A stretch of DNA of 64,000 bases from positions 62,001 to 126,000 of the forward strand of contig JALMLS010000369.1 in NCBI GenBank assembly GCA_038496445.1. The letters are read 5' to 3'. This stretch comes from Trichosphaerium sp. ATCC 40318. Its lineage: Eukaryota > Protista > Tubulinea. A model generated the notes under the pieces. It was not told the DNA's origin, searched no databases, and worked only from the letters and a program-made list of their open reading frames with translations. Positions 45,487-63,056 of the stretch are shown one piece after another; position 1 is the stretch's first letter, and every line of letters begins with the position of its first letter. The position numbers and the translations under genes are program-made.

Positions 45487-47138
45487 TCATTCACGTGTAC
45501 ATTTGAAAACAATAGCAAAAATTTGTGTTTCTTGACGATCCCTACTAGCTAACTCAGTTGTTGATACAAGCTCCCAGTTATATTGTTTTTGAGTTAACAA
45601 TCTAATACGTTCTGAATTGAATGCGCAACTAACAATGATACAATACCCATCCTAAGATGAAAAAAAAATAAGAAAAACTGACTTCATACGAAATGCTTAA
45701 AGAGAATGTTTGTACCTTCTTTAAAGCGGATGAAACTGCTGTTAGAGCAATATCTAGGTTTTCAAGTGAAGCTGGGGTACAGAATATAGCATCTAGAGTT
45801 CCCTTATCAATGACAAGGTCGAACCCACCCTTAGGAGCTACTTTTTCGTCTAACTTTTTGATATCCATCATAAAGTACTTGCAGCCTTTGATATCCTTGT
45901 CTATCGCTCTCTCTTGCATATAAGTAATAACAGATCCAACAAAATCAATATTAACAGAGTCTTTAAAGCCATCAGCCCACATCTCTTCGCTCATGAGTGA
46001 GTTTCCACAGCCGACATTTAAAATCTTTAATGAATCACGTTTTGCTTTGACATCCTCCTTACAGCAAGGCACATACTTTTCGAGTACAGGCAACACTGCT
46101 GAATAGTCTACATACCTAAATCTCATGTCAGTACAGCGTACAACCAATAAGGTTATATACCAGTCGTAGGTTAGTACATTAGAACCAGTCTTGAGCCCAG
46201 AGTATCGTTTGTCCCAAAACTCTTTACTGCCAAATACTAAAAAAACAAAAGAGTTAACAATGCCATCATTAAAAAACTGTCTTCATCTCTGCGTACAATC
46301 TCCGATTTCTTTACCCATATCACGTATGAGCTCTTCTTCTTTTGACTTTGGTGGAGGAGGTGAAGGGTTCTTTATCTTGTTTATACATTGGCTAACAGTC
46401 ATACCTTGTATAGAACGATCGTACACATCAAATATACGTAAATAGAATAACAACAGCTGTGGGTAAAAGTTTTGACGCATGCCCTCTTCCGTGAACTTGT
46501 CACCCATTATACCCTTCATTACTTTGGTTAATAGGGAAGAGGAGGATGTTGAGGCGTTTAATATACCTTTAGTATGGTATCAGCTGCATCTGTTTTTAGG
46601 TTAGGCCTCGCCCAAAATACTTTGATTTCCTTCAGTTCATTTCTGACATTTTATGAGCAAACCGCGCTGACACATTAAAATGATATTATTCGTACCTTGC
46701 TGGTTCCTTTGATAAAGTCTCAAGCTGTTGTGTGTAAATTTGAAAATACGCCTCAGCTAGGTCAGCCAATAAACCACAATTTTCTTTTAGTTTCTCTTGT
46801 AGTTTTGCTAGGCGTTAATATTATTGGGTTGCAGTTATCAAGGCATATTTGCGTTACCGTATGTGTACTTTATTGTATCTGCGTTATAGTCCGCAGAAAT
46901 CCATCCAATCTTTTCATTAAACTTCATACATAGCGTTGAAGCGTTTTCGCAGATTTTTTGAAGTGTGTCTGGCAAAATTAAATCTGTTAGGAACTTACGG
47001 AAGTTACTAGCATGTTCGCATTGCCAATTTGTCGCGTAGTGTAGGTTTTTTGTAAAGAAATCTAGCAAGCGTTACAGGTGAACATACAAAACCAATCTTA
47101 CCTGCTTCTAAACGCGAAAGTGGAGTTCGTTCAGCCAT
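45487..47138 (-). CDS. EEF1AKMT4/METTL13-like SAM methyltransferase with an unassigned N-terminal domain
   Basis: FGSKEFWDKRY, TYDW|YVDY, KILNVGCGNSLMSEEM, NIDF, FDLVIDKGTLDAI. Upstream exons appear to splice in from ATG 47138. Confidence 0.75.
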
Positions 47139-47245: not shown

Positions 47246-49495
47246 ATGTTGAGTCGTTCATATCAAACATTCGCACGCACAAGCAGAGTAAGAGCCATTA
47301 ATGAGCTTTTTTAAACTTTATTCCAGTGCCATTCCGCTTTTTGCATGCTAACAAAACGTAGGCCACTACGGTCTCTAAAACAAAGCCAACCACAAGAGTA
47401 AGTGTAAAACCTTACGCTACTGGCAAAGATCTTCGTTTTGGTTCAGAATGCCGTGCTCTCATGCTCCAAGGTGTCCAAAAGCTTGCAGACGCTGTACAAG
47501 TAACTTTGGGACCAAAGGTAAGCAGTGAGTTACAATTGAAAAAGAGGGCTGAAAACAATTTTAGGGCAGAAACGTGATCCTTGAGCAATCATTTGGATCT
47601 CCTAAGATTACAAAGGATGGTGTCACTGTCGCAAAACACATCGAGTTCTCGGATAAAATGATGAACTTGGGTGCTCAACTTGTACGCTCCGTAGCAAGCA
47701 AGACCAACGACCAAGCTGGAGATGGTGCGGAAAAATTAACCAAAAACTTTCGAATTAACTTGAAAAATAGGTACAACAACCGCCACAATCCTCACACGCG
47801 CCATCTACCAAGAGGGATGTAAATCCGTAGCCGCTGGCATGAACCCAATGGATTTGCGTAGAGGTATCAGCCTCGCCGTCGAAAAGATGTTGAAAGAGCT
47901 CGACAGATTGAGCAAAACAATCACATCCACTGAAGAGACACAACAGGTAACTTAGTATTAAAATACGATACGTCTTCCGCCAACACACTCTATAAAGGTA
48001 GCTACAATCTCTGCAAACAGCGACAAAGAGATTGGTTCCATGATCGCCGAAGCCATGCAAAAAGTAGGCAAAGAAGGTGTAGTCACAGTCGAAGACGGAA
48101 AAGCAAACTACAGTGAGATCGAAATTGTAGAAGGTCTTAAATTCGACCAAGGAACTCTATCCCACCACTTCGCAACTGATAAAAAAACACAAACTTGCGT
48201 ACGCTCTCTAGTTCATAAAACGCGTTCTTTCGTTTTCTAATCGCGAAAAAATCATTAACGAGTTCTTTTAGGAGTACAAAGACTGCAAAGTTCTTATTGT
48301 TGACAAAAAAATCTCAAATGTACATGACCTTGTACCAATCCTTCAACAATTGTCTCAATCCCGTAAACCATTCCTCATCATTACTGTTGACGGTACGCTT
48401 TTTTTTTTTTTTGGAAGCGAACTTGTTCTTGTGTTGGATTTTCTTCGCTTTTACTTATAGTGATATTTAGGTATGGAATCAGATGTCCTTGCTACCCTCG
48501 TTTTGAACAGATTGCGTGGTATGCAAGTAAGTTAAAAGTGGTTTAGAAAGAGTAATAAGAATGCTCATTTTTTTCCTCTTCTAGGTTTGCGCCGTAAAAG
48601 CTCCAGGTTTCGGCGACTTCAGAACCGCTACACTTCAAGATATCGCTGTCGCAACTGGTAAGATAATAGAAACTTTGAAATAATATCTGACGTACATTTT
48701 TAGGCGCTACAGTCATCAGTGAAGAACTCGGATACAAACTCGAAGATGTAACCATGGAACAACTTGGTACAGTAAAGCACGTTAAGGTTACCAAAAACGA
48801 TACCATCCTCATTGATGGTGCTGGTGACAAAACTGCTATTGATGAACGTTGCGACCAAATCCGTGGTATCATCAAAGAGACTGATTCCGATTACGAAAGA
48901 GAAAAGGCAGAACAACGTTTGGCTAAATTGACCGGAGGTATTGCTATCCTAAAGGTTGGTGGTGCTAGTGAAGTTGAAGTTGGCGAAAAGAAAGATCGTG
49001 TTACTGATGCTCTTAACGCTACACAAGCAGCTCTCGCTGAGGGTATTGTACCTGGTGGTGGTACCGCTTTGTTGTACGCTTCACGCGCTTTGAAAGATCT
49101 CAAGGGCGAGAACATGGCACAAAATGTTGGTATTCAAATTGTAGCCAACGCTGCACAAGCTCCTTGCAAACAAATTGTCAACAACGCTGGACAAGAAGGT
49201 GCTATCGTTGTTGGTAAGCTCTTGGACCCTCCAGTTGGAGAAGTCGATGAGAACCGTGGATACAACGCCCAAACAGGCGACTACGTCGACATGCTTGAGG
49301 CTGGTATCATTGATCCAACCAGAGTTGTCAGAACTGCACTCACAGATGCTGCTTCCGTTGCATCCCTCATGACCACATCTGAATGTATGGTCACCGAGGA
49401 AGTTAGCTCAGACTGTACGCAAATTATAAAAGCAAATCGTACTTTTTTTGATAATCACTAATACCTTATTAGCATCAGCACCAGCTGGTCCTCCA

Positions 49496-52775: not shown

Positions 52776-55700
52776 ATGGCAGAAATAGAGACTGTTGGGG
52801 CGACCCAAAAAAAAAAAAAGGGCAAAAAAGCCAAGAACACCGATGTTTCTGACTTTGAAATGGTACATACACTACCCAGAAGCAAATTATACTTTGCTTG
52901 TTTCTTCCGCTTGGAAAACTTGCTATTCATACTCAAATCTTACAATATTGTAGCACTGGCATAGACAATCGGCAGAAGAGTGCGCAGAAGAGCTAAACAC
53001 CGATCTCGAGAGGGTTCGTCTAAACACGCTTATTTTGTCTTAAAAACTCTTCACAATTGAGCCACGCACTAACAAAGCTAGGGTCTAAGTGCACAAGCGC
53101 GTGCGCACGCTCTCACTGTCTACGGCAAAAATGCCCTCACTCCACCAAAGGGAACGCCTGAAATCATCAAATTTATTAAAGAGATGACAGGTTTCTTTTC
53201 TCTCCTTTTGTGGGCTGGTTCTATTTTGTCCTTTGTCGGTTTTATTATCGATGAGACCAAGGATCAATCTAATGTACGTCACTGCACGACACAACTCGTA
53301 CTTTTAAAAATACCTCACAACAAAAACCCGCTCTACGCGCGTAAAAACCAAACGACAAATAAGAAAAACTATGCAACTCCGACTTTTAACCTATTAATGT
53401 CTACTGGGGATTAATTGGTTTCCTAGTTATATATTGGTGTTGTGTTGGCTTTTGTAGTCTTGGCTACGGGCACATTTTCCTATTTTCAAAATCGTAACTC
53501 TAGTAAAGTTATGGACAGTTTCAACAATTACTTACCTCAGCATGCTACTGCACTTATTGACGGAAAACCCGTTTCAGTTGAAGTAGAGACACTTGTGCCT
53601 GGTGATATAGTACAGATCAGAGGGGGTGATAAAATCCCCGCTGATGTCCGTATGGTTGCTGTTAACACTTTCAAAGTGCGTGCTTTGGTTGTTTTTTTTA
53701 GGTTGTTTTGTGTTCTTATTTTTTCGCTATTAGGTCGATAACTCTTCTTTGACTGGTGAACCAGAGCCTCAAGCCCGTAACACTGATGATTCTGATGAAA
53801 AGAACCCTTACGAGGCTCTTAACATTGCTTTCTACGGTACTATCGCTACTACAGGCACTTGCACTGGTATTGTTGGTAAGTAACACAACTTTTTTCATAA
53901 ACTACAAGTTTCTGAGTACTCATCACAACGCATAGTCTTGACTGGTGATAACACTGGACTTGGCGCTATTGCTAACCTCGCTGGTAAAACTGACGAGACC
54001 GATACGCCTATTCATCAAGAAATCGAATTGTTCGTATGGATCATCTCTGGTGTCGCTATCTTCCTTGGTGTTACCTTCTTTATTGTCGGTATCGTCATTG
54101 AACCTAATATCATCACCAACGTCGTTTTTGCTATTGGTATTATTGTCGCCAATGTACCAGAAGGTCTACTCGCCACTGTAACCGTATCATTGGCTTTGAC
54201 TGCTGTCCGTATGGCCAAGAAGCACGTTCTTGTAAAACAACTTGAATCTGTAGAAACCCTTGGTTCCACGACAACAATTTGCTCCGATAAGACCGGTACA
54301 CTCACCCAGAATCGTATGACTGTATCTCATGTATGGTACGACGGAAAAATCTGGTCCACAAAGACCTCCGTTTCCGATGCCGATTTTGATAAGAGCGACG
54401 AATCTTTCCAAGCACTTCAACGTATTGGTACTTTGTGTAACATTGCTACCTTCAACGAGCAAGATCTCCTCGATGGAAGACCTCTTCAAGATTGCGAAAC
54501 CATTGGTGACGCTTCAGAGTCCGCTATGATCAAATTTTGTCATCCTATCCGTGATATCAACGACTACAGAGCTAAATGCGAAAAAGTATTCGATATTCCA
54601 TTCAACAGCAAGAACAAATGGCAACTTCACGTTCACAAACAAGAAGGCAAAGGTAAAAACTTGGTAATCCTTCTCAAAGGTGCTCCAGAAAAAGTTATGG
54701 GCATGTGTGATAAAATCATGATTGACGGAAAGGTACGAAAAGTCTTTTTTACTTTTTTTGAGTTGGTTTCTTGTCTGTTCTTCTCTTCCTCTTCTTACGT
54801 TTCGTTTAGATTGTTCCTTTGGACAACAAATGGCAAAAGAAATTTAAAAAGGCATACGACAAACTTGGTGGTATGGGTGAACGTGTCCTCGGATTCTGTC
54901 AGCTCGAACTCGATGCTAAGTATGATGAAGATTTTGAATTTGCTCAAGATGATAAGGGTAAAACAACCTTCCCTATGGACGGACTTGTTTTCGTTGGTTT
55001 GATGGCTCTTATTGATCCTCCTCGCCCAGCTGTACCAATGGCTGTTGGCAAATGTAAGGATGCTGGTATTAAGGTTATCATGGTAACTGGTGATCACCCA
55101 ATTACTGCTAAGGCTATTGCAAGAAAAGGTAACTCGATAAAAAAACTTGCGGAGGAAATTTCTTGTTGTTTCACTTTTGGATCGTGTTCTGACCTTTTGT
55201 TTTATAGTTGGTATCATTACTGGTGATACTATCCAAGATATTGCCTCTAGAGAAGGAATTCCAGAGGAAGAAGTAGATCCTCGACGTGCTGAAGCTATTG
55301 TTATGCACGGTAGTGAGATTTCAGAGATTGAGACTGAAGAAGAATGGGACGAGATTTTGGATCACCCTCAAATCGTATTCGCTCGTACTTCCCCACAGCA
55401 AAAGCTTATCATTGTCGCAAACAACCAAAGACGTGGTGAGATCGTTGCCGTAACAGGTGATGGTGTCAATGACTCCCCTGCTTTGCAGGCCGCTGATATT
55501 GGTGTCGCTATGGGTATTGCTGGATCTGATATTTCAAAGGAAGTCGCCAACATGATCTTGTTGGATGATAACTTTGCTTCCATTGTACGTCGTCAATATT
55601 GCCTCTGTTTTCATTTGCTTTTTCTCCCTCTATTCTATGTGTATGCTGACGTGCTATTGTAGGTTAACGGTGTAGAAGAAGGTCGTTTGATTTTCGATAA

Positions 55701-56634
55701 CTTGAAAAAGTCAATCGCTTACACCCTCACTTCTAACATTCCAGAAATCACACCTTTCTTGACTTTTATTACTGTTCAACTTCCACTACCACTTTCTACT
55801 GTATTGATCCTATGTATTGATCTTGGTACTGATGTTATTCCTGCTATCAGTCTTGCTTATGAAGCTGCCGAATCTGATATCATGCGTCGCCCACCACGTA
55901 ATAGGTAAGAAGCAGCAGAAACCTACGTTGTTTTTTGTTGACTTTTTTTATCTAGTTCTGTTGATCACTTGGTTACAGCAAAACTTATCGGTTTTGCTTA
56001 CGGACAAATTGGTATTATCCAAGCTCTTGCTGGATTCTACGCTTACATTGTTGTAATGGGTGACTATGGTTACCCTCCAAGTTCCTTGCCTGGTCAAGGT
56101 ATCATCTGGAAAGATCCTGGAATTATGGTTGCTGGTTCTCCTGCTTTTGCAAGAGAAGAAGCGCTTGCTACAGCTCAAACAGCTTACTTCGTATCCATTG
56201 TAGTAGTACAATGGGCTGATCTTCTTGTTTGTAAGACACGTAAGCTCTCCATCATTCAACAAGGAGTCTGGTAGTACGTAGACACTTTTATCTTTTGTTT
56301 TCGCTTGGGCGAGCGCCTGCGACCTCTCTTCTTTCTTGTGTCTAAGTTTTGTTTTTAGTAACAAGCGTTTGCTGTTTGGACTCTTCTTTGAGACCGCTTT
56401 GGCTTGTCTTTTGATCTACGTTCCATTCTTGAACCCAGTGTTTGGAACAAGGCCACTTGTCTTTTTGCATTGGCTTCCTGCTATTCCATTCTCAATCCTC
56501 ATCTTTGTTTATGATGAGATCCGTAAATTCCTCCTCAGAAGATACCCAGGAAGTACGTGATTTTTGTTTTTGTTGGGTTGATGCTTACGTTTTTTTTTTC
56601 TTCAGGATTTATTGAGAACCATACTTATTATTAG
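52776..56634 (+). CDS. P-type ATPase type IIC (Na+/K+-ATPase alpha-like)
   Basis: [91 protein letters not shown] and C-terminal HTYY. Confidence 0.95.
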
Positions 56635-57215: not shown

Positions 57216-58235
57216 ATGACGCAACAAAGCCCGGCTAGTAAGAAAGTACTACTAGCACCTTCTGGATGGTCATGTACAACTAATGGCGAACCACCTCAAA
57301 TAACAGAGCCGGTACCTGATGGGATGTGTATTGAGCTGTATTCGTTCATTAAGGGCGCGTACTTTTTCGAAACTATCGAAAGCGACACAAGAGATTTAGC
57401 ACTCAACGAAAGGCTCCTTTCAGATATTCTCCATAGGCTCCCTTCAGCTGTAGATTGTAATACAACACTGGAATTACTGAGGGCTCTCAGCAATTTCTTG
57501 TGGGCGAACAATATCGTTTTGCGCACTGCTTCAGAGTCTTTGATAAAAGGTGCTTTGCACCAGTACGACTCTCATTACTATGAGTATTGGTCAGCCAAAA
57601 CGCTTGAAAAGTTTTCAATGATTGAAGGTATTGCTCAAAGCGTCTATATACCGTACATAGACTACGACAGCGAACTCGACAGTGACCAAAACTCAGATTT
57701 TGGGTACCAAAGAATCACGTGTAGCAACAAGCTCATAACTTGTAGGCAATATGCGTTTTATGGTATTCCAACAGAGATTATATGGCATATTCTGGAGTAT
57801 TGTACAACATCAATACATGTGCGACAAGTGTCATTTTCTTGTCGTAAAATCCATACATCACTTGTACGCAACAAGTTTCCTCCTATCATTGCGATTTACA
57901 TACCAGAAGCTGCACAGAAACAGCTATTCTTTCTGCAAACTTCAACAATATGGACTCTTGCTCTTTGCAAACAAGCTCAACTCACTCCTAGAGGAGCAGT
58001 ATTTCTCTCTAGTAGGATCTTGCATTGTTTTGATACCCCTTGCGTGTCCAAGTGCGATGTTGATGATTTCTTCAAGAAATTGTTTGCAACGCACAGTTTT
58101 TTCTATTCCACAGATCAAATAAGGGCTCAGTTGTTTGTTTACGATCCAGCGTACGCATCCTACTTTTATAAGAAATGCAAGCACTTCAAAAGGAAGAAAG
58201 CGGTAGACTTAGGTATATGTATTGCGCCTTGTTAA
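57216..58235 (+). CDS. Intronless 339-aa protein with a central F-box-like motif
   Basis: Long uninterrupted ORF. FYGIPTEIIWHILEYC..VRQVSFSCRKIH fits the F-box consensus; the flanks are unassigned. Confidence 0.55.
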   Translation: MTQQSPASKKVLLAPSGWSCTTNGEPPQITEPVPDGMCIELYSFIKGAYFFETIESDTRDLALNERLLSDILHRLPSAVDCNTTLELLRALSNFLWANNIVLRTASESLIKGALHQYDSHYYEYWSAKTLEKFSMIEGIAQSVYIPYIDYDSELDSDQNSDFGYQRITCSNKLITCRQYAFYGIPTEIIWHILEYCTTSIHVRQVSFSCRKIHTSLVRNKFPPIIAIYIPEAAQKQLFFLQTSTIWTLALCKQAQLTPRGAVFLSSRILHCFDTPCVSKCDVDDFFKKLFATHSFFYSTDQIRAQLFVYDPAYASYFYKKCKHFKRKKAVDLGICIAPC

Positions 58236-58730
58236 ATAAACATCATATTCTGTGTAAGCGTCTTTAATTGTTTTGGTCTCTTTGAAAAAAAAATTCTTCA
58301 GAGCATAGTATGAAATACAATCAACTAGGGCCGCAGTATTTGCTTTACGTTTTGTTAGAAATGCACTCAAGTGAGCTGCATCTATTTAAGTAACATGTAG
58401 ACACAGGCCAAAAGGGGTATTCATCAGTGTACATGTAGTCGTTTTGCTAATGTCAATGCAACTGATCTTCTAAAAAACCTTATGAAAATGTAAGTTGTTT
58501 GAATACAGCTGTCTTTAGTTTCCTTTTATTAACGCTTCAAGTAACTTAAGCGTTCGTGCAGGTGTGGTTTTATTATTGGTGGAAAACAAGTGCTTGTGTT
58601 GATTATTTAATCAACACCAAACATAGAATTATTTTATTAAAATATTCGCATTTTTCACAGGAACGTGATTTAGTTGCGTGAATACTGTTAGCCTGGTGTT
58701 GTTGAAGCGTATACAATAGATTAACGAAAA

Positions 58731-58841
58731 GTGGCAAAACCTTCGCTAACGTGAGGGTCAGCCCACGGCCGCAAGCACTCAAGGCACCTCGGAACACATA
58801 AGAAACGAACGATTAAGCTTGAATCATCACGATATCCTGGG
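58731..58841 (-). ncRNA. Putative structured small RNA gene, copy 1 of 4
   Basis: ~110-nt GC-richer repeat, foldable into stems, with an AAACCAC element 61 nt upstream (plus-strand gtggttt at 58902). Confidence 0.6.
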
Positions 58842-58899
58842 ATGATCGATAAAAGAATACGTCAAATATAAAAAGCCTCTTCTTCTCAAGTAAATAAAA

Positions 58900-58908
58900 T
58901 TGTGGTTT
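58900..58908 (-). promoter_or_regulatory. AAACCAC(AA) upstream element of the small-RNA family (also at ~60774, ~61100, ~61540)
   Basis: Fixed 59-61 nt spacing in all four copies although the intervening sequence differs in copies 2 and 4. Resembles the Dictyostelium DUSE (WCCCAYAA at about -60). Confidence 0.55.
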
Positions 58909-59213
58909 TAAGCATTGGTTACTGAACTTTGTTGTCTCTTTGTATAACAAGTGCTTATATTTAGATATTTCACCAAGCGGTAGACGGTAGCAATTTTTTT
59001 TTGTTGGTTTGTTGATTGATTAATTGAAACGAATGGTGCTGTAGTATTATACTGTACTGGTTTATTGAAATAAAGTAGTATTAAGTGACTAATTTCGGGA
59101 GGAATTGAAGCCTGCGACGAGTGAAGTAGAATAAAAACTGAATACGACATTGCTACAGCGAAGAAAATGTACATTAGTATAGTTGGTGGCTTATCAACCG
59201 GCTTGCGGGCCTC

Positions 59214-60323
59214 TTACTTGAAAGGTGAATGAATACTATTTTGTTGTACCATAGTTACGCCCAATGATCGAATACAGTCCTTTGTAATTTGACTACTTTC
59301 AGTGATTTCAATGTTTTTAAGAGACGTCAAGTGTTTCAAACAATCATTTGTAATGTTCTTACAATGCCAAAGAATGAGGTACTCTAGCTTGCCTAAATTC
59401 TTCAATCCTTCGTCTGTTATACTATCACACTTCCAAAGAAATAGCCGCTTAAGATTAACCAAGTTCTTGATTCCTTCATCTGTTATATTCTGACATTGGT
59501 AAAGAACAAGAGTTTCAAGATTAGTCAAGTACTTCAATCCATATTCTTTTATATTGTTCCGAACGCTTTCGTGTATAGTCAGGTATTTAAGGTTTACTAA
59601 ATGCCTCAGTCCTGATCCGTTAATACTATCTGACGCAATGTAGAGTCGAACTAGATTTACTAAATGTCTAAGTCCGTTGTCTGTTATCTTGTTTCTACTG
59701 CCTAGACTTAAGTGTTTGACATTTGTAAGTGACTTAAGTCCTTCGTCTGTAATGAAAGTTCCTCTATGTATAGTAATGGTATGTACGTTTCCAAGGTGTT
59801 TGAGCCATGTGTCACGTGGCTTGTAGAGCGTAATTTCGTATACATCTTTGAGTGCTTTGATGCCTTCATCGCTGATATTTTTACAATGACTAATGTCAAT
59901 TGTGTGTACTCCTCTTAGAGACCTCAAAGAAACATCCGTTATGCCCGTTCGTGCCAAGTCGATTGTATGGATACTACGTTTTCCATTTGTTAGTAAAGAA
60001 ACACCCTGATCTGTAGTGTTCGAACAACACAGACGGATCGTGTGAACGCCCGATAGACAAGCCAAGTCTCTTGCTGATACTTGAAGCCTAAAGGAAGCAA
60101 TTCTAGTGTTGTTAAGCAACGGACTGCCTTTTAACACGTGACAATCTGATGACGCTTTCAAAGTGATCTTATCAAAACCAATATTATAGCGAATGATGTC
60201 ATTGAAAAGGTGAGATACTGTGGAGGTTGTAATCCGCTGTTTTCTATTCAAAAAACGCAAAGTAAATGTTAGCATCTCTGGTGGAAGATGTCCAATATTG
60301 ACTCGCTCAATCCATTGTTCCAT
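59214..60323 (-). CDS. Intronless F-box/LRR protein
   Basis: IGHLPPEMLTFTLRFL..VSHLF F-box; LRRs of type LxxLxLxxCxxITDEGLKNL. The linker YNIGF..I.LK..L.GSPLL.NT is shared with the 28098-29054 protein. Confidence 0.88.
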   Translation of the reverse strand: MEQWIERVNIGHLPPEMLTFTLRFLNRKQRITTSTVSHLFNDIIRYNIGFDKITLKASSDCHVLKGSPLLNNTRIASFRLQVSARDLACLSGVHTIRLCCSNTTDQGVSLLTNGKRSIHTIDLARTGITDVSLRSLRGVHTIDISHCKNISDEGIKALKDVYEITLYKPRDTWLKHLGNVHTITIHRGTFITDEGLKSLTNVKHLSLGSRNKITDNGLRHLVNLVRLYIASDSINGSGLRHLVNLKYLTIHESVRNNIKEYGLKYLTNLETLVLYQCQNITDEGIKNLVNLKRLFLWKCDSITDEGLKNLGKLEYLILWHCKNITNDCLKHLTSLKNIEITESSQITKDCIRSLGVTMVQQNSIHSPFK

Positions 60324-60603
60324 GGGCTTAGAGTAGTGCTGTGTGTGTATTTAAGAAGGATTATCTGCAAAAGCAATTCCACGTGGAAAAAAAATGCCAA
60401 ACTTAGAAAAGAGCGTTAAATTGATGTACTCTGATGGTACTAAAAGTTTCCTCATGACTCCCTCTACCAGGGTTTATACCCTGGTAAAAGTACACAAGAA
60501 TTACTGTCTAAATTCTGAGGTCACAAAAAGGACAGAGTAGTACTTTCATTGCGCTAGTACAATAGTTTTTGCCACAGCCCAATTTTCCAGGGTAAATATT
60601 GTA

Positions 60604-60715
60604 GTGGCAAAATCCTTCGCTAACGTGAGGGTCAGCCCACTGCCGCAAGCATTCAAGCACCACGGAACACGCGAGAAACGACCGGTAAAGAATGAATTCT
60701 ATGCGATATCCTGGG
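60604..60715 (-). ncRNA. Putative structured small RNA gene, copy 2 of 4
   Basis: Diverged copy with pairing preserved; upstream element 59 nt away (gtggttt at 60774). Confidence 0.6.
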
Positions 60716-60927
60716 GTAGTTAGTGCATGCAACACTTCTCTTTTCAAAGGCTGGAAACGAAATAAAAAAAAAAGTGGTTTTATCAGTTTTGTAGTACATT
60801 GCCAGCTCCACAACAAAAAACACACTCTTCAGTTGGTAGAAAGAAATATTAAACTCTTTGTTTGATGGTTTTGATTGATTAGCGTGTCGTATTAGAATTC
60901 CAACAATTTGGTTCTGTCTCATTTTGA

Positions 60928-61039
60928 GTGGCAAAATCCTTCGCTAACGTGAGGGTCAGCCCACTGCCGCAAGCACTCAAGGCACCTCGGAACACATAAG
61001 AAACGAACGATTAAGCTTGAATCATCACGATATCCTGGG
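60928..61039 (-). ncRNA. Putative structured small RNA gene, copy 3 of 4
   Basis: Nearly identical to copy 1; upstream element 61 nt away (gtggttt at 61100). Confidence 0.6.
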
Positions 61040-61367
61040 ATGATCGATAAAAGAATACCTCAAATCTATAAAGACTACAAAACAAAAGTAAATAAAATTG
61101 TGGTTTGCACAAACATACAGATACCCAAAAATTTAAACAAGCAAAACCTTTTTCTTTTTGATTGGTTTGTGATTGATTAATTGAAAATGAATGGGCTAAC
61201 GTTATGAAGTGCGTTGTTTAGTACAAAATTAATGTTGAGGTCACTAGATTTAGGAGAAGGCGGTATGATTTGATACCGTTGGAGTAAAATAAATTGTGTT
61301 TTTTTCTTGCCTGTTTAAGAGAGAAAGGTAAATCTTTGTTCTACAGTTAAAATTCCGTGCGTACACA

Positions 61368-61480
61368 GTCGCAAAACCTTCACTAACGCGGGGACCAACC
61401 ACACTGCAGCAAGCACTCAAGGCACCACGGAACACACAAGAAGCAACCGGTTAAGAATGAATTCTTTACGATATCCTGGG
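61368..61480 (-). ncRNA. Putative structured small RNA gene, copy 4 of 4
   Basis: Most diverged copy, with substitutions giving G-U pairs on the minus strand; upstream element 60 nt away (gtggttt at 61540). Confidence 0.55.
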
Positions 61481-61874
61481 TAACAGCAACACAGGAACTT
61501 TCAAGTTAAATGTATGTCACATCGAAAATAATAAATATTGTGGTTTCACCGCGAAGAGTACTCATGGTTCTACACAAACAACGGCAATCGTATAACAGCT
61601 CTCAGATCTGTGTATGGGAGATCGAAGGAGTATTTTTTTTGATTGAAACGGAAATAATTGATTCTCCAATGTTGTTAATTTTCAACACCTGCTTCATGAG
61701 GTATGGCACTGTACCTTTGGTACGGGAAAAAAATCGTTCATTGTTACCCTAACACCAGGTTTAAGCCTTATCCTAACATAACCCTAATTATCAGAAATGG
61801 GAACTTTTTAATAAACGAAAAAGTAAAATCAACGACCAATGGTTCTATTTAGTGTACAACGCTCTCTTTTTATT

Positions 61875-63056
61875 TTACATTAATACACAACGCTTAGCGT
61901 CTGTATTATCAACAGACATACCAAGACCAGCTTCAACTAACTACAGCAAGGTCATCAACAAAAAGAAAGCTTGGTGAGATGGAAGAAAAACTACACAAGC
62001 TAGAAAAGAAAAAAAGAAGATTACGCACACTATCAAATAGCTCTTTCAGGTTTTTTTGTGTTAAAGCGGAACACTCAACGTATTTAGCCATACCAAGTGC
62101 TTTGGCTTTGTCTTGTGCTTCCTTGATTGCTATAATTTCTGTTATTGTCTTAATGATTCAACAAAATCTTAAAGACACATTGAGTACGTACAAACAGTCC
62201 TCTCTGCAGCTAAATCTGAATAACAATGGTGAGTATTTATAGGTAAAACTCAGGTAAAGGTTATTTATATTACCTTCTTTGAATCCTGCTAGAACTAATG
62301 CAGCTTCAGGAGCACCTTTTTTAGCTACATCAACCCACTAAGGTTTATTAATATTATGTTGTTTCAGTTTTAATAAATTCAGGAATCCATACAACACCAA
62401 CATCATTGAAACTCTCCTCGTCTGTGATTGAAAAACAAACAGCAAATACATTTGTTTGTGGGAATGATAGCGCAGTAAGCTGAAGAAAAAGTGAGTTCAA
62501 AACGATCAACTTTTTTGTTCGGATTTCTTGTCTGTCTTTAGTTGCTTTTTATTTAGCCTCCGAGATTCCATTTACGCTCGTTTGCTGGAACGTATAACGT
62601 GGCGATTTAAAAACACTTTTTCGTGATTTCGAAAATCAGAATCACGTGCACTCGAAAAAAGTAAACCGTACACGCAACATTTGTTCGTCTTTGCTTCCGA
62701 ACGTATCTACGATTGTCAGCGGTTTACAGAGAAGGAGAAAACAAAAATGGTTTTTTATTTTACCCCACAAGCCTAAATTAACAGGATGGCCATTAGACAT
62801 AATGTTAACGCTGTAATTATCACTGATAAAGGCGTTAATGAAGTGTTACGCCGTTTAGACTGTAGTACATTGTTTTTGGAACGTATGATGGAAAAGCTTC
62901 TGTCGAATAGCTAATTATACAACCTTAAGGTGTTTTAGGATAGTTTTGTACGTTTCTAATTCTTACATGTTTTGCCAACCTTGTTTGCGCCCACGAATAC
63001 ACTATCACAGTTAACATATGCGTAAATAATGCTACTAACCATTTAATAGACTTCAT
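61875..63056 (-). CDS. Atypical Rho/Rac-family small GTPase (many small exons; absent from the ORF track)
   Basis: MKSIKC|VFVGANKVGKT|CCIISYSTEAFPSYVPKT|SDNYSVNIMSNGHPVNLGLW|DTFGSKDEQML..LSFPQTNVFAVCFSI..KYVECSALTQKNLKELFD..CVLM* (CAAX box). Confidence 0.85.

Follow-up and report, generated by a model that had tools for sequence, protein, structure and literature searches.

We have found that a stretch of DNA from the amoeba Trichosphaerium sp. ATCC 40318 carries four copies of a short noncoding unit that may represent a family of small nuclear RNA (snRNA)-type genes. The stretch, referred to here as the window, comprises 64,000 nucleotides (nt) of contig JALMLS010000369.1 (assembly GCA_038496445.1, positions 62,001 to 126,000 of the forward strand), and positions are counted from its first letter. 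The units lie in tandem and in one orientation, at the coordinates and on the minus strand that a preliminary description of this DNA had reported. They are listed here with their scores from a covariance model that was built from the four units and that finds only these four in 64 kb (132-147 bits).

58731-58841 (minus strand): small-RNA unit copy 1; 111 nt, type A apical loop, 145 bits
60604-60715 (minus strand): small-RNA unit copy 2; 112 nt, type B apical loop, 141 bits
60928-61039 (minus strand): small-RNA unit copy 3; 112 nt, type A loop, 147 bits
61368-61480 (minus strand): small-RNA unit copy 4; 113 nt, type B loop, the most diverged, 132 bits

All four copies start with CCCAGGATATCG and end with TTTTGC(C/G)AC. 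The 5′ dodecamer CCCAGGATATCG occurs exactly four times in the window (1.3 expected at ≤2 mismatches), as does GTGTTCCGWGGTGC (0.4 expected at ≤2 mismatches). Between copies, identity is 12/12 in the 5′ block, 22-25/25 in the middle block and 33-43 of 43-44 positions in the 3′ domain; variation within the unit is greatest in the segment that follows nt 12, where 20-26/33 positions are identical between the two loop types. The downstream flank is identical at only 5-11/30 positions, and the spacer and both flanks are about 30-40% identical between the old copies. Homology thus ends sharply, and the stop that the preliminary description had noted at one end of the unit holds at both. Copies 2 and 3 are identical throughout the 3′ domain (43/43) and at just 20/33 positions in the loop region, a mosaic pattern of the kind that constraint, or gene conversion confined to the gene, typically produces. 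Copies 1 and 3, in turn, are 96% identical over 143 nt, promoter and spacer included; this pair is a recent duplicate, so the four units amount to about three independent lineages. Copy 1 lacks the A of GGAUUUUG, and an A-to-C change disrupts one of its outer-stem pairs. Single-base indels separate the copies and shift the open frame from one to the next, which rules out a coding exon and bears out the earlier view that the units are noncoding. It had also been considered that they might be the termini of a dispersed transposon; no transposon termini, terminal inverted repeats or target-site duplications were seen at the units.

Each unit is preceded by its own upstream elements, a proximal box and, further away, a distal box, with distances counted to CCCAGG at the start of the unit.

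58891-58908 (minus strand): proximal box of copy 1, AAACCACAATTTTATTTA; last C 61 nt upstream of CCCAGG
60763-60780 (minus strand): proximal box of copy 2, AAACCACTTTTTTTTTTA; 59 nt upstream
61089-61106 (minus strand): proximal box of copy 3, AAACCACAATTTTATTTA; 61 nt upstream
61529-61546 (minus strand): proximal box of copy 4, AAACCACAATATTTATTA; 60 nt upstream
59013-59021 (minus strand): distal box of copy 1, AATCAATCA; 180 nt upstream of CCCAGG
60872-60880 (minus strand): distal box of copy 2, AATCAATCA; 165 nt upstream
61170-61178 (minus strand): distal box of copy 3, AATCAATCA; 139 nt upstream
61640-61646 (minus strand): partial distal box of copy 4, TCAATCA; about 166 nt upstream
61655-61663 (minus strand): one-mismatch distal box in the copy 4 region, AATCAATTA

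The preliminary description had placed AAACCAC 61, 59, 61 and 60 nt upstream of copies 1 to 4, and these distances are confirmed when counted from the last C. In the proximal box AAACCAC is accompanied by a tail rich in A and T. By itself AAACCAC is no commoner in the window than expected (12 found, 12.7 expected), and it is therefore the fixed distance to the unit that constitutes the signal. The extended 18-nt box AAACCACAATNTTNTTTA has six matches at ≤2 mismatches in the window, where 0.32 would be expected. The proximal box together with 14 further nt is identical at 17-21/21 positions between copies, and the spacer between box and start at 14-19/47 among the old copies. Alignment of the upstream regions also reveals T(A)ATCAATCA upstream of all four copies; the exact 9-mer AATCAATCA occurs only three times in the whole 64-kb window, each time upstream of a unit, and is a candidate enhancer-like element of the small-RNA genes. 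snRNA-type genes usually have a proximal box at a fixed distance and a distal box at a variable one.

We note that box-like sequences are also found elsewhere in the window. A near-perfect copy of the proximal box, AAACCACAATTTTCTTTT, lies on the plus strand at 46771-46788, with no recognisable RNA about 60 nt downstream and no Rfam match; it could be a chance occurrence or the promoter of another small RNA. A degenerate box-like site, AAAACACAATTTATTTTA, lies between copies 3 and 4 (61285-61302, minus strand), and an AAACCAC at 58564-58600 (minus strand) has an upstream flank resembling those of copies 1 and 2 (families D11 and D13 of the repeat search). No unit follows either site, and both may be promoter relics.

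The question of RNA structure can be approached through the hand-folded structure of the preliminary description, whose 20 pairs across four copies give 80 pair cells. On the minus strand 97.5% of these cells hold a standard pair, as against 73.8% for the plus-strand equivalent, and G-U pairs make up 19 of the 80 (24%). The many G-U cells, together with the poor pairing of the plus strand, favour the minus strand as the RNA strand, in line with the earlier argument that the changes in copy 4 stay paired only as G-U on that strand. The individual changes on which that argument drew are all present. Two pairs are altered on both sides, one in the 5′ hairpin (C-G, U-A or U-G, depending on the copy) and one in the outer 3′ stem (G-C to U-G), and the inner hairpin of copy 4 has four one-sided changes (GCUGAC/GUUAGC to GUUGGU/GUUAGU), all of them still paired through G-U. 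Substitutions in the two best-supported helices stay paired only on the minus strand, and helix 1, which would sequester the 5′ end, is invariant across the four copies. Against a gene model stand the folding energies predicted by RNAfold (-26.6 to -29.4 kcal/mol, z +0.4 to +0.6), which are no better than those of shuffled sequences, and the covariation in four sequences, which does not beat a shuffle control (95/500 and 200/500) in what is an underpowered comparison; the RNAalifold consensus is weak. The earlier characterisation of the units as structured draws no support from folding energy, and a structured RNA seems to us plausible rather than established.

No known RNA family accounts for the units. 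Rfam returns no family at gathering score in the whole window, and at E≤10 on segments of 3.7 kb, 161 nt and 141 nt it returns only chance-level matches (snoU18 at E 1.2, mir-365, TLS-PK6 and a C/D model at E 4.3); ARAGORN finds no transfer RNA (tRNA) or transfer-messenger RNA in the window. This agrees with the earlier failure to match the units to known families. The further proposal that they constitute an undescribed class is premature, because the 5′ end suggests a divergent U11-type RNA, as discussed below. A scan of metagenome contigs with CCCAGGATATCG-N(25-45)-GTGTTCCG gave 30 matches, which look like bacterial chance matches and lack the rest of the unit, while a protein search with a spurious open reading frame (ORF) over copy 2, aimed at further genomic copies, gave no match, and a literature search on the unit's own sequence strings returned unrelated primers only.

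Several specific identities were considered, and most of them were rejected. A box C/D small nucleolar RNA (snoRNA) does not fit, since GUGAUGA is confined to copies 1 and 3, with GCAUAGA in its place in copy 2 and GUAAAGA in copy 4, and since CUGA is internal; nor does a box H/ACA snoRNA, as ANANNA is missing from the linker and GCCACU or GCGACU stands at the 3′ end. U5, U6atac, U12, U3, Y, vault and telomerase RNA are ruled out on their defining motifs. The unit has neither a U5 loop nor an ACAGAGA/AGC arrangement; its 5′ and 3′ ends are not complementary, unlike those of Y, vault and Class I RNAs; and there is no Rfam match to Y, vault or U6atac RNA. Of the features of type-3 RNA polymerase III (Pol III) genes, a T4 run is present in all copies, yet conservation runs 6 nt past it (GCCACT), and the four copies share no consistent TATA at -30. 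Separately, a weak snoU18-like C/D match lies at 61786-61855 on the minus strand (24 bits, E 1.2, far under the gathering score). A CUGA D box can be made out there, a clear C box cannot, and chance is the probable explanation.

The arrangement at this locus is clearly non-random, and we consider it likely, judging from sequence, that each of the four units is a small nuclear-type RNA gene, transcribed independently of the others and from the minus strand. Transcription would start at an A one or two nt before CCCAGG and end just past GCCACU, and would probably be carried out by RNA polymerase II (Pol II), or alternatively by Pol III. The RNA would begin with an invariant 5′ end, free or weakly paired, followed by a long imperfect 5′ hairpin with two tip variants, a conserved linker and a 3′ stem-loop beside a U-run (GGAUUUUGCC). 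The preliminary description had suggested that the variable 5′ loop serves as a guide; we find just two sequence variants and no target, and this suggestion gains no support here.

The closest parallel for the promoter is the Dictyostelium upstream sequence element (DUSE), [AT]CCCA[AT]AA, which lies about 60-63 nt upstream of spliceosomal snRNA and Class I RNA genes in dictyostelids (PMC3188802, PMC7919456). Variants with two Cs occur in some dictyostelid groups, and the element drives Pol II as well as Pol III genes (PMC3188802, PMC7919456). As with DUSE-driven genes, the box stands 59-61 nt upstream in four of four copies, separated from the unit by an unconserved spacer (30-40% identity in the old copies), and the units are clustered multi-copy small RNAs with conserved ends and a variable interior. 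The comparison with snRNA-type genes drawn in the preliminary description therefore survives in part: the units are bounded, each with its own box at a fixed distance, and the box is DUSE-like in place and flavour, but as a sequence it (AAACCACAAT) mismatches the published consensus, and the units have the additional distal AATCAATCA. Class I RNAs themselves are 42-65 nt long, start with AAG, end with CUGU and carry an 11-nt motif beside a stem that joins their 5′ and 3′ ends (PMC7919456). The unit, at 111-113 nt, is about twice as long, starts with (A)YCCCAGG and ends with GCCACU, and has no AAG start, no CUGU end, no 11-nt motif and no stem joining the two ends.

What might such an RNA do? 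The invariant 12-nt block at its 5′ end contains, at nt 4-10, the heptamer AGGAUAU. U12-type 5′ splice sites have AUAUCCU as their core, and the heptamer is perfectly complementary to it.

58832-58838 (minus strand): AGGAUAU in the invariant 5′ block of copy 1
60706-60712 (minus strand): AGGAUAU in the invariant 5′ block of copy 2
61030-61036 (minus strand): AGGAUAU in the invariant 5′ block of copy 3
61471-61477 (minus strand): AGGAUAU in the invariant 5′ block of copy 4

At the cluster, ATATCCT has four matches on the plus strand, and all of them are the unit heptamer. The probability of meeting this complement by chance is about 5e-4 within the first 14 nt of the RNA and 6.5e-3 over its whole length. 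Duplex energies were predicted for the first 16 nt of the RNA against donor motifs taken from 10.1101/2020.10.12.336362. Canonical U12-type donors give -11.1 (AT) and -10.5 kcal/mol (GT) and donors with U at +6 give -8.4 (AT) and -7.8 kcal/mol (GT), compared with -3.8 +/- 2.2 kcal/mol for random 14-mers and -1.9 and -3.9 kcal/mol for U2-type donors. In Physarum, RTATCYTT is the donor motif of some 21,000 U12-type introns, which include donors with U at +6 (10.1101/2020.10.12.336362).

We therefore set out the possibility that this multi-copy RNA recognises the 5′ splice site in the manner of a divergent U11. Its invariant 5′ end would act through base pairing, with AGGAUAU matched to positions +1 to +7 of U12-type donors and with wobble extending the pairing to G at +1 and U at +6, such that R at +1 and Y at +6 would be accommodated. 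With U11 snRNA the unit shares the complementarity of its 5′ end to the U12-type donor, an snRNA-type promoter that is external, and a U-run near its 3′ part. This Sm-like run reads GAUUUUGC in copies 2 and 3 (GAUUUUG) and GGUUUUGC in copies 1 and 4; with PuAU4-6GPu as the Sm consensus, the GAUUUUG of copies 2 and 3 comes close (PMC2396436). A U11-like function in 5′ splice-site recognition nevertheless appears to us possible but doubtful. We regard as unlikely a more far-reaching version, in which the units would be a hitherto undescribed class of snRNA that, alongside canonical U11 or in its place, pairs with U12-type donors at +1 to +7. The minor spliceosome would thereby have adapted to an enormous multiplication of U12-type introns in the lineage, and the loop variants would be isoforms.

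A considerable number of observations weigh against a U11-like role. Some concern the 3′ part of the RNA: in copies 1 and 4 the A of the Sm-like site is missing, the site overlaps the stem GGCAG/UUGCC (supported by one G-C to U-G change), and homology ends 6 nt past it, with no conserved 3′ terminal hairpin. The unit is also shorter than U11 (about 112 nt), is present as four clustered copies with two loop variants, and lacks any sequence or structure match to the U11 family model (RF00548), even at E≤10 on the 3.7-kb, 161-nt and 141-nt segments. Others concern the pairing itself. Canonical U11 pairs with about +4 to +9 of the donor. The register of +1 to +7 in the unit is unlike this, a C rather than an A stands opposite the conserved U at +8, and the GGA of AGGAUAU is paired in the predicted 5′ hairpin. 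The complementarity was moreover noticed post hoc, after other snRNA motifs had been tried, and GATATC is a palindrome and could be an element that acts at the level of DNA. A U11 has been reported in Physarum on the basis of covariance-model searches (Lopez et al. 2008; PMC2396436). Finally, U12-type introns could not be confirmed within the window: RTATCCT is not enriched (14 found, 10.7 expected), a Physarum-style scan for such introns is uninformative, its background rate being equal to the signal, and the single U12-type candidate inspected sits within a U2-type intron. We also considered, and rejected, a plus-strand U12-type intron that would begin at ATATCCTGGG and use GTGGTTT as its branch site; neither TTTGA nor TTAAC is present, and a promoter is the better fit to the constant spacing of 60 nt.

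U1 snRNA provides a second point of comparison. The units resemble it in general plan, with a 5′ end that would pair with roughly the first seven positions of the intron, followed by hairpins and then a U-run. They differ from it in lacking ACUUACCU as their 5′ end, in forming only a weak predicted duplex with U2-type donors (-1.9 to -3.9 kcal/mol) and in giving no U1 match in Rfam.

Other accounts of the units share much of the same evidence. It is quite possible, if somewhat short of an even chance, that they form an orphan snRNA-type or small Cajal body-specific RNA-like family with some other role, lineage-restricted in the manner of dictyostelid Class I RNAs, in which case the complementarity to AUAUCCU would have arisen by chance or be directed at some other target. 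Everything that favours the gene model favours this account too, as does the lack of an Rfam match, and lineage-specific noncoding RNAs driven by a box about 60 nt upstream are abundant in Amoebozoa (PMC7919456). It offers no mechanism, and it does not explain why the sole fully invariant 5′ block complements the U12-type donor core exactly over 7 nt. A different view would take the units as elements of DNA or of mRNA leaders, namely repeated promoter or first-exon modules of neighbouring F-box/leucine-rich-repeat genes. Copy 2 does lie about 280 nt upstream of the same-strand F-box/leucine-rich-repeat ORF at 59214-60323, which has a CAG acceptor-like site before its ATG. We nonetheless find this view improbable, since copies 3 and 4 each lead directly into the promoter of the next copy, copy 1 heads towards a convergent plus-strand gene and has no downstream gene of its own, conservation spans the whole 112 nt and then stops sharply, and the wobble-preserving changes suggest constraint at the level of RNA.

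The units might instead be decaying local duplicates of a dead element that have no function today, be they pseudogenes or a non-autonomous repeat. That there are only four copies, all within 3 kb, would fit such an origin, and so would the recent duplication of copies 1 and 3 and the defects of copies 1 and 4 (the missing A in both and the broken pair in copy 1). Against it, flanks and spacer have decayed to background between the old copies, yet the unit is retained along with two short boxes upstream of it; the many changes in copy 4 preserve pairing; and with terminal inverted repeats and target-site duplications lacking at the units as well we think this origin very unlikely. Least of all do we favour spliced-leader (SL) RNA genes, an exceedingly improbable reading in which the 5′ part (CCCAGGAUAUCG) would be a leader trans-spliced onto mRNAs from a GU donor in the 5′ hairpin or at its base. 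The likeness lies in the size of the genes (about 110 nt), their tandem arrangement, their snRNA-type promoters, a 5′ end that pairs with a GU-bearing region (UAU/GUGUUC or GAG/GUGCC) and a U-run near the 3′ end. SL exons are normally the most conserved part of an SL RNA. Here the putative leader is the most variable part of the unit (20-26/33 between types), its donor context is poor (UAU/GUGUUC or GWG/GUGC), no Sm site lies between the two hairpins, the U-run being instead at the 3′ end, Rfam reports no SL family, and the genes seen in the window have ordinary cis introns. To our knowledge, SL trans-splicing is not known in Amoebozoa.

The units lie among protein-coding sequences. The F-box/leucine-rich-repeat ORF at 59214-60323 (minus strand) is intronless, encodes 369 amino acids and sits inside the RNA cluster on the same strand. 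Exact look-ups of four ORFs of the window in the assembly collection return no record, and this ORF likewise has none there. A plus-strand ORF of 339 amino acids at 57216-58235 contains an F-box-like IPTEIIWHILEYC motif. A search of 5.8 billion proteins at E≤0.001 yields no homologue for it, and it may be either an orphan gene or no gene at all. A P-type (Na/K-like) ATPase gene at 53938-56274 (plus strand) has several GT-AG introns of about 80 nt, none of them U12-type, with the donors GTACGA, GTAACT, GTACGT and GTAAGA. Further away, at 48754-49461 (plus strand), lies an exon of mitochondrial HSP60 whose best database identity is just 68%, which implies that the protein collection holds no close relative at fragment length and none that could be used for synteny. 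We note, too, that a block of about 33 nt, CTGTCTTTAGTT.CTTTTTATT..., is common to two intergenic sites on the plus strand (58509-58541 and 62532-62564; 79% identity) and may be a 3′-end or terminator motif.

Taken as snRNA-type genes, the units have an interpretation that is reasonable but unproven, and a divergent U11-type RNA is the most specific testable idea to come from it. We know of no description of how 5′ splice sites are efficiently recognised across minor introns as numerous as those of Physarum. Slime moulds of the Physarum type are the one known case in which U12-type introns have expanded, to some 21,000 or about 12% of introns, and the U12 snRNA of Physarum has co-evolved with a changed branch-point motif (10.1101/2020.10.12.336362). 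If the U11-like reading is true, expanded minor introns would find their missing partner in a multi-copy RNA that pairs with +1 to +7 and accepts both R at +1 and Y at +6. Even if the link to U11 fails, the locus would still provide a clean amoebozoan snRNA-type promoter outside the dictyostelids, made up of a proximal box at -60 and a distal box, and, with it, a new family of orphan small RNAs.

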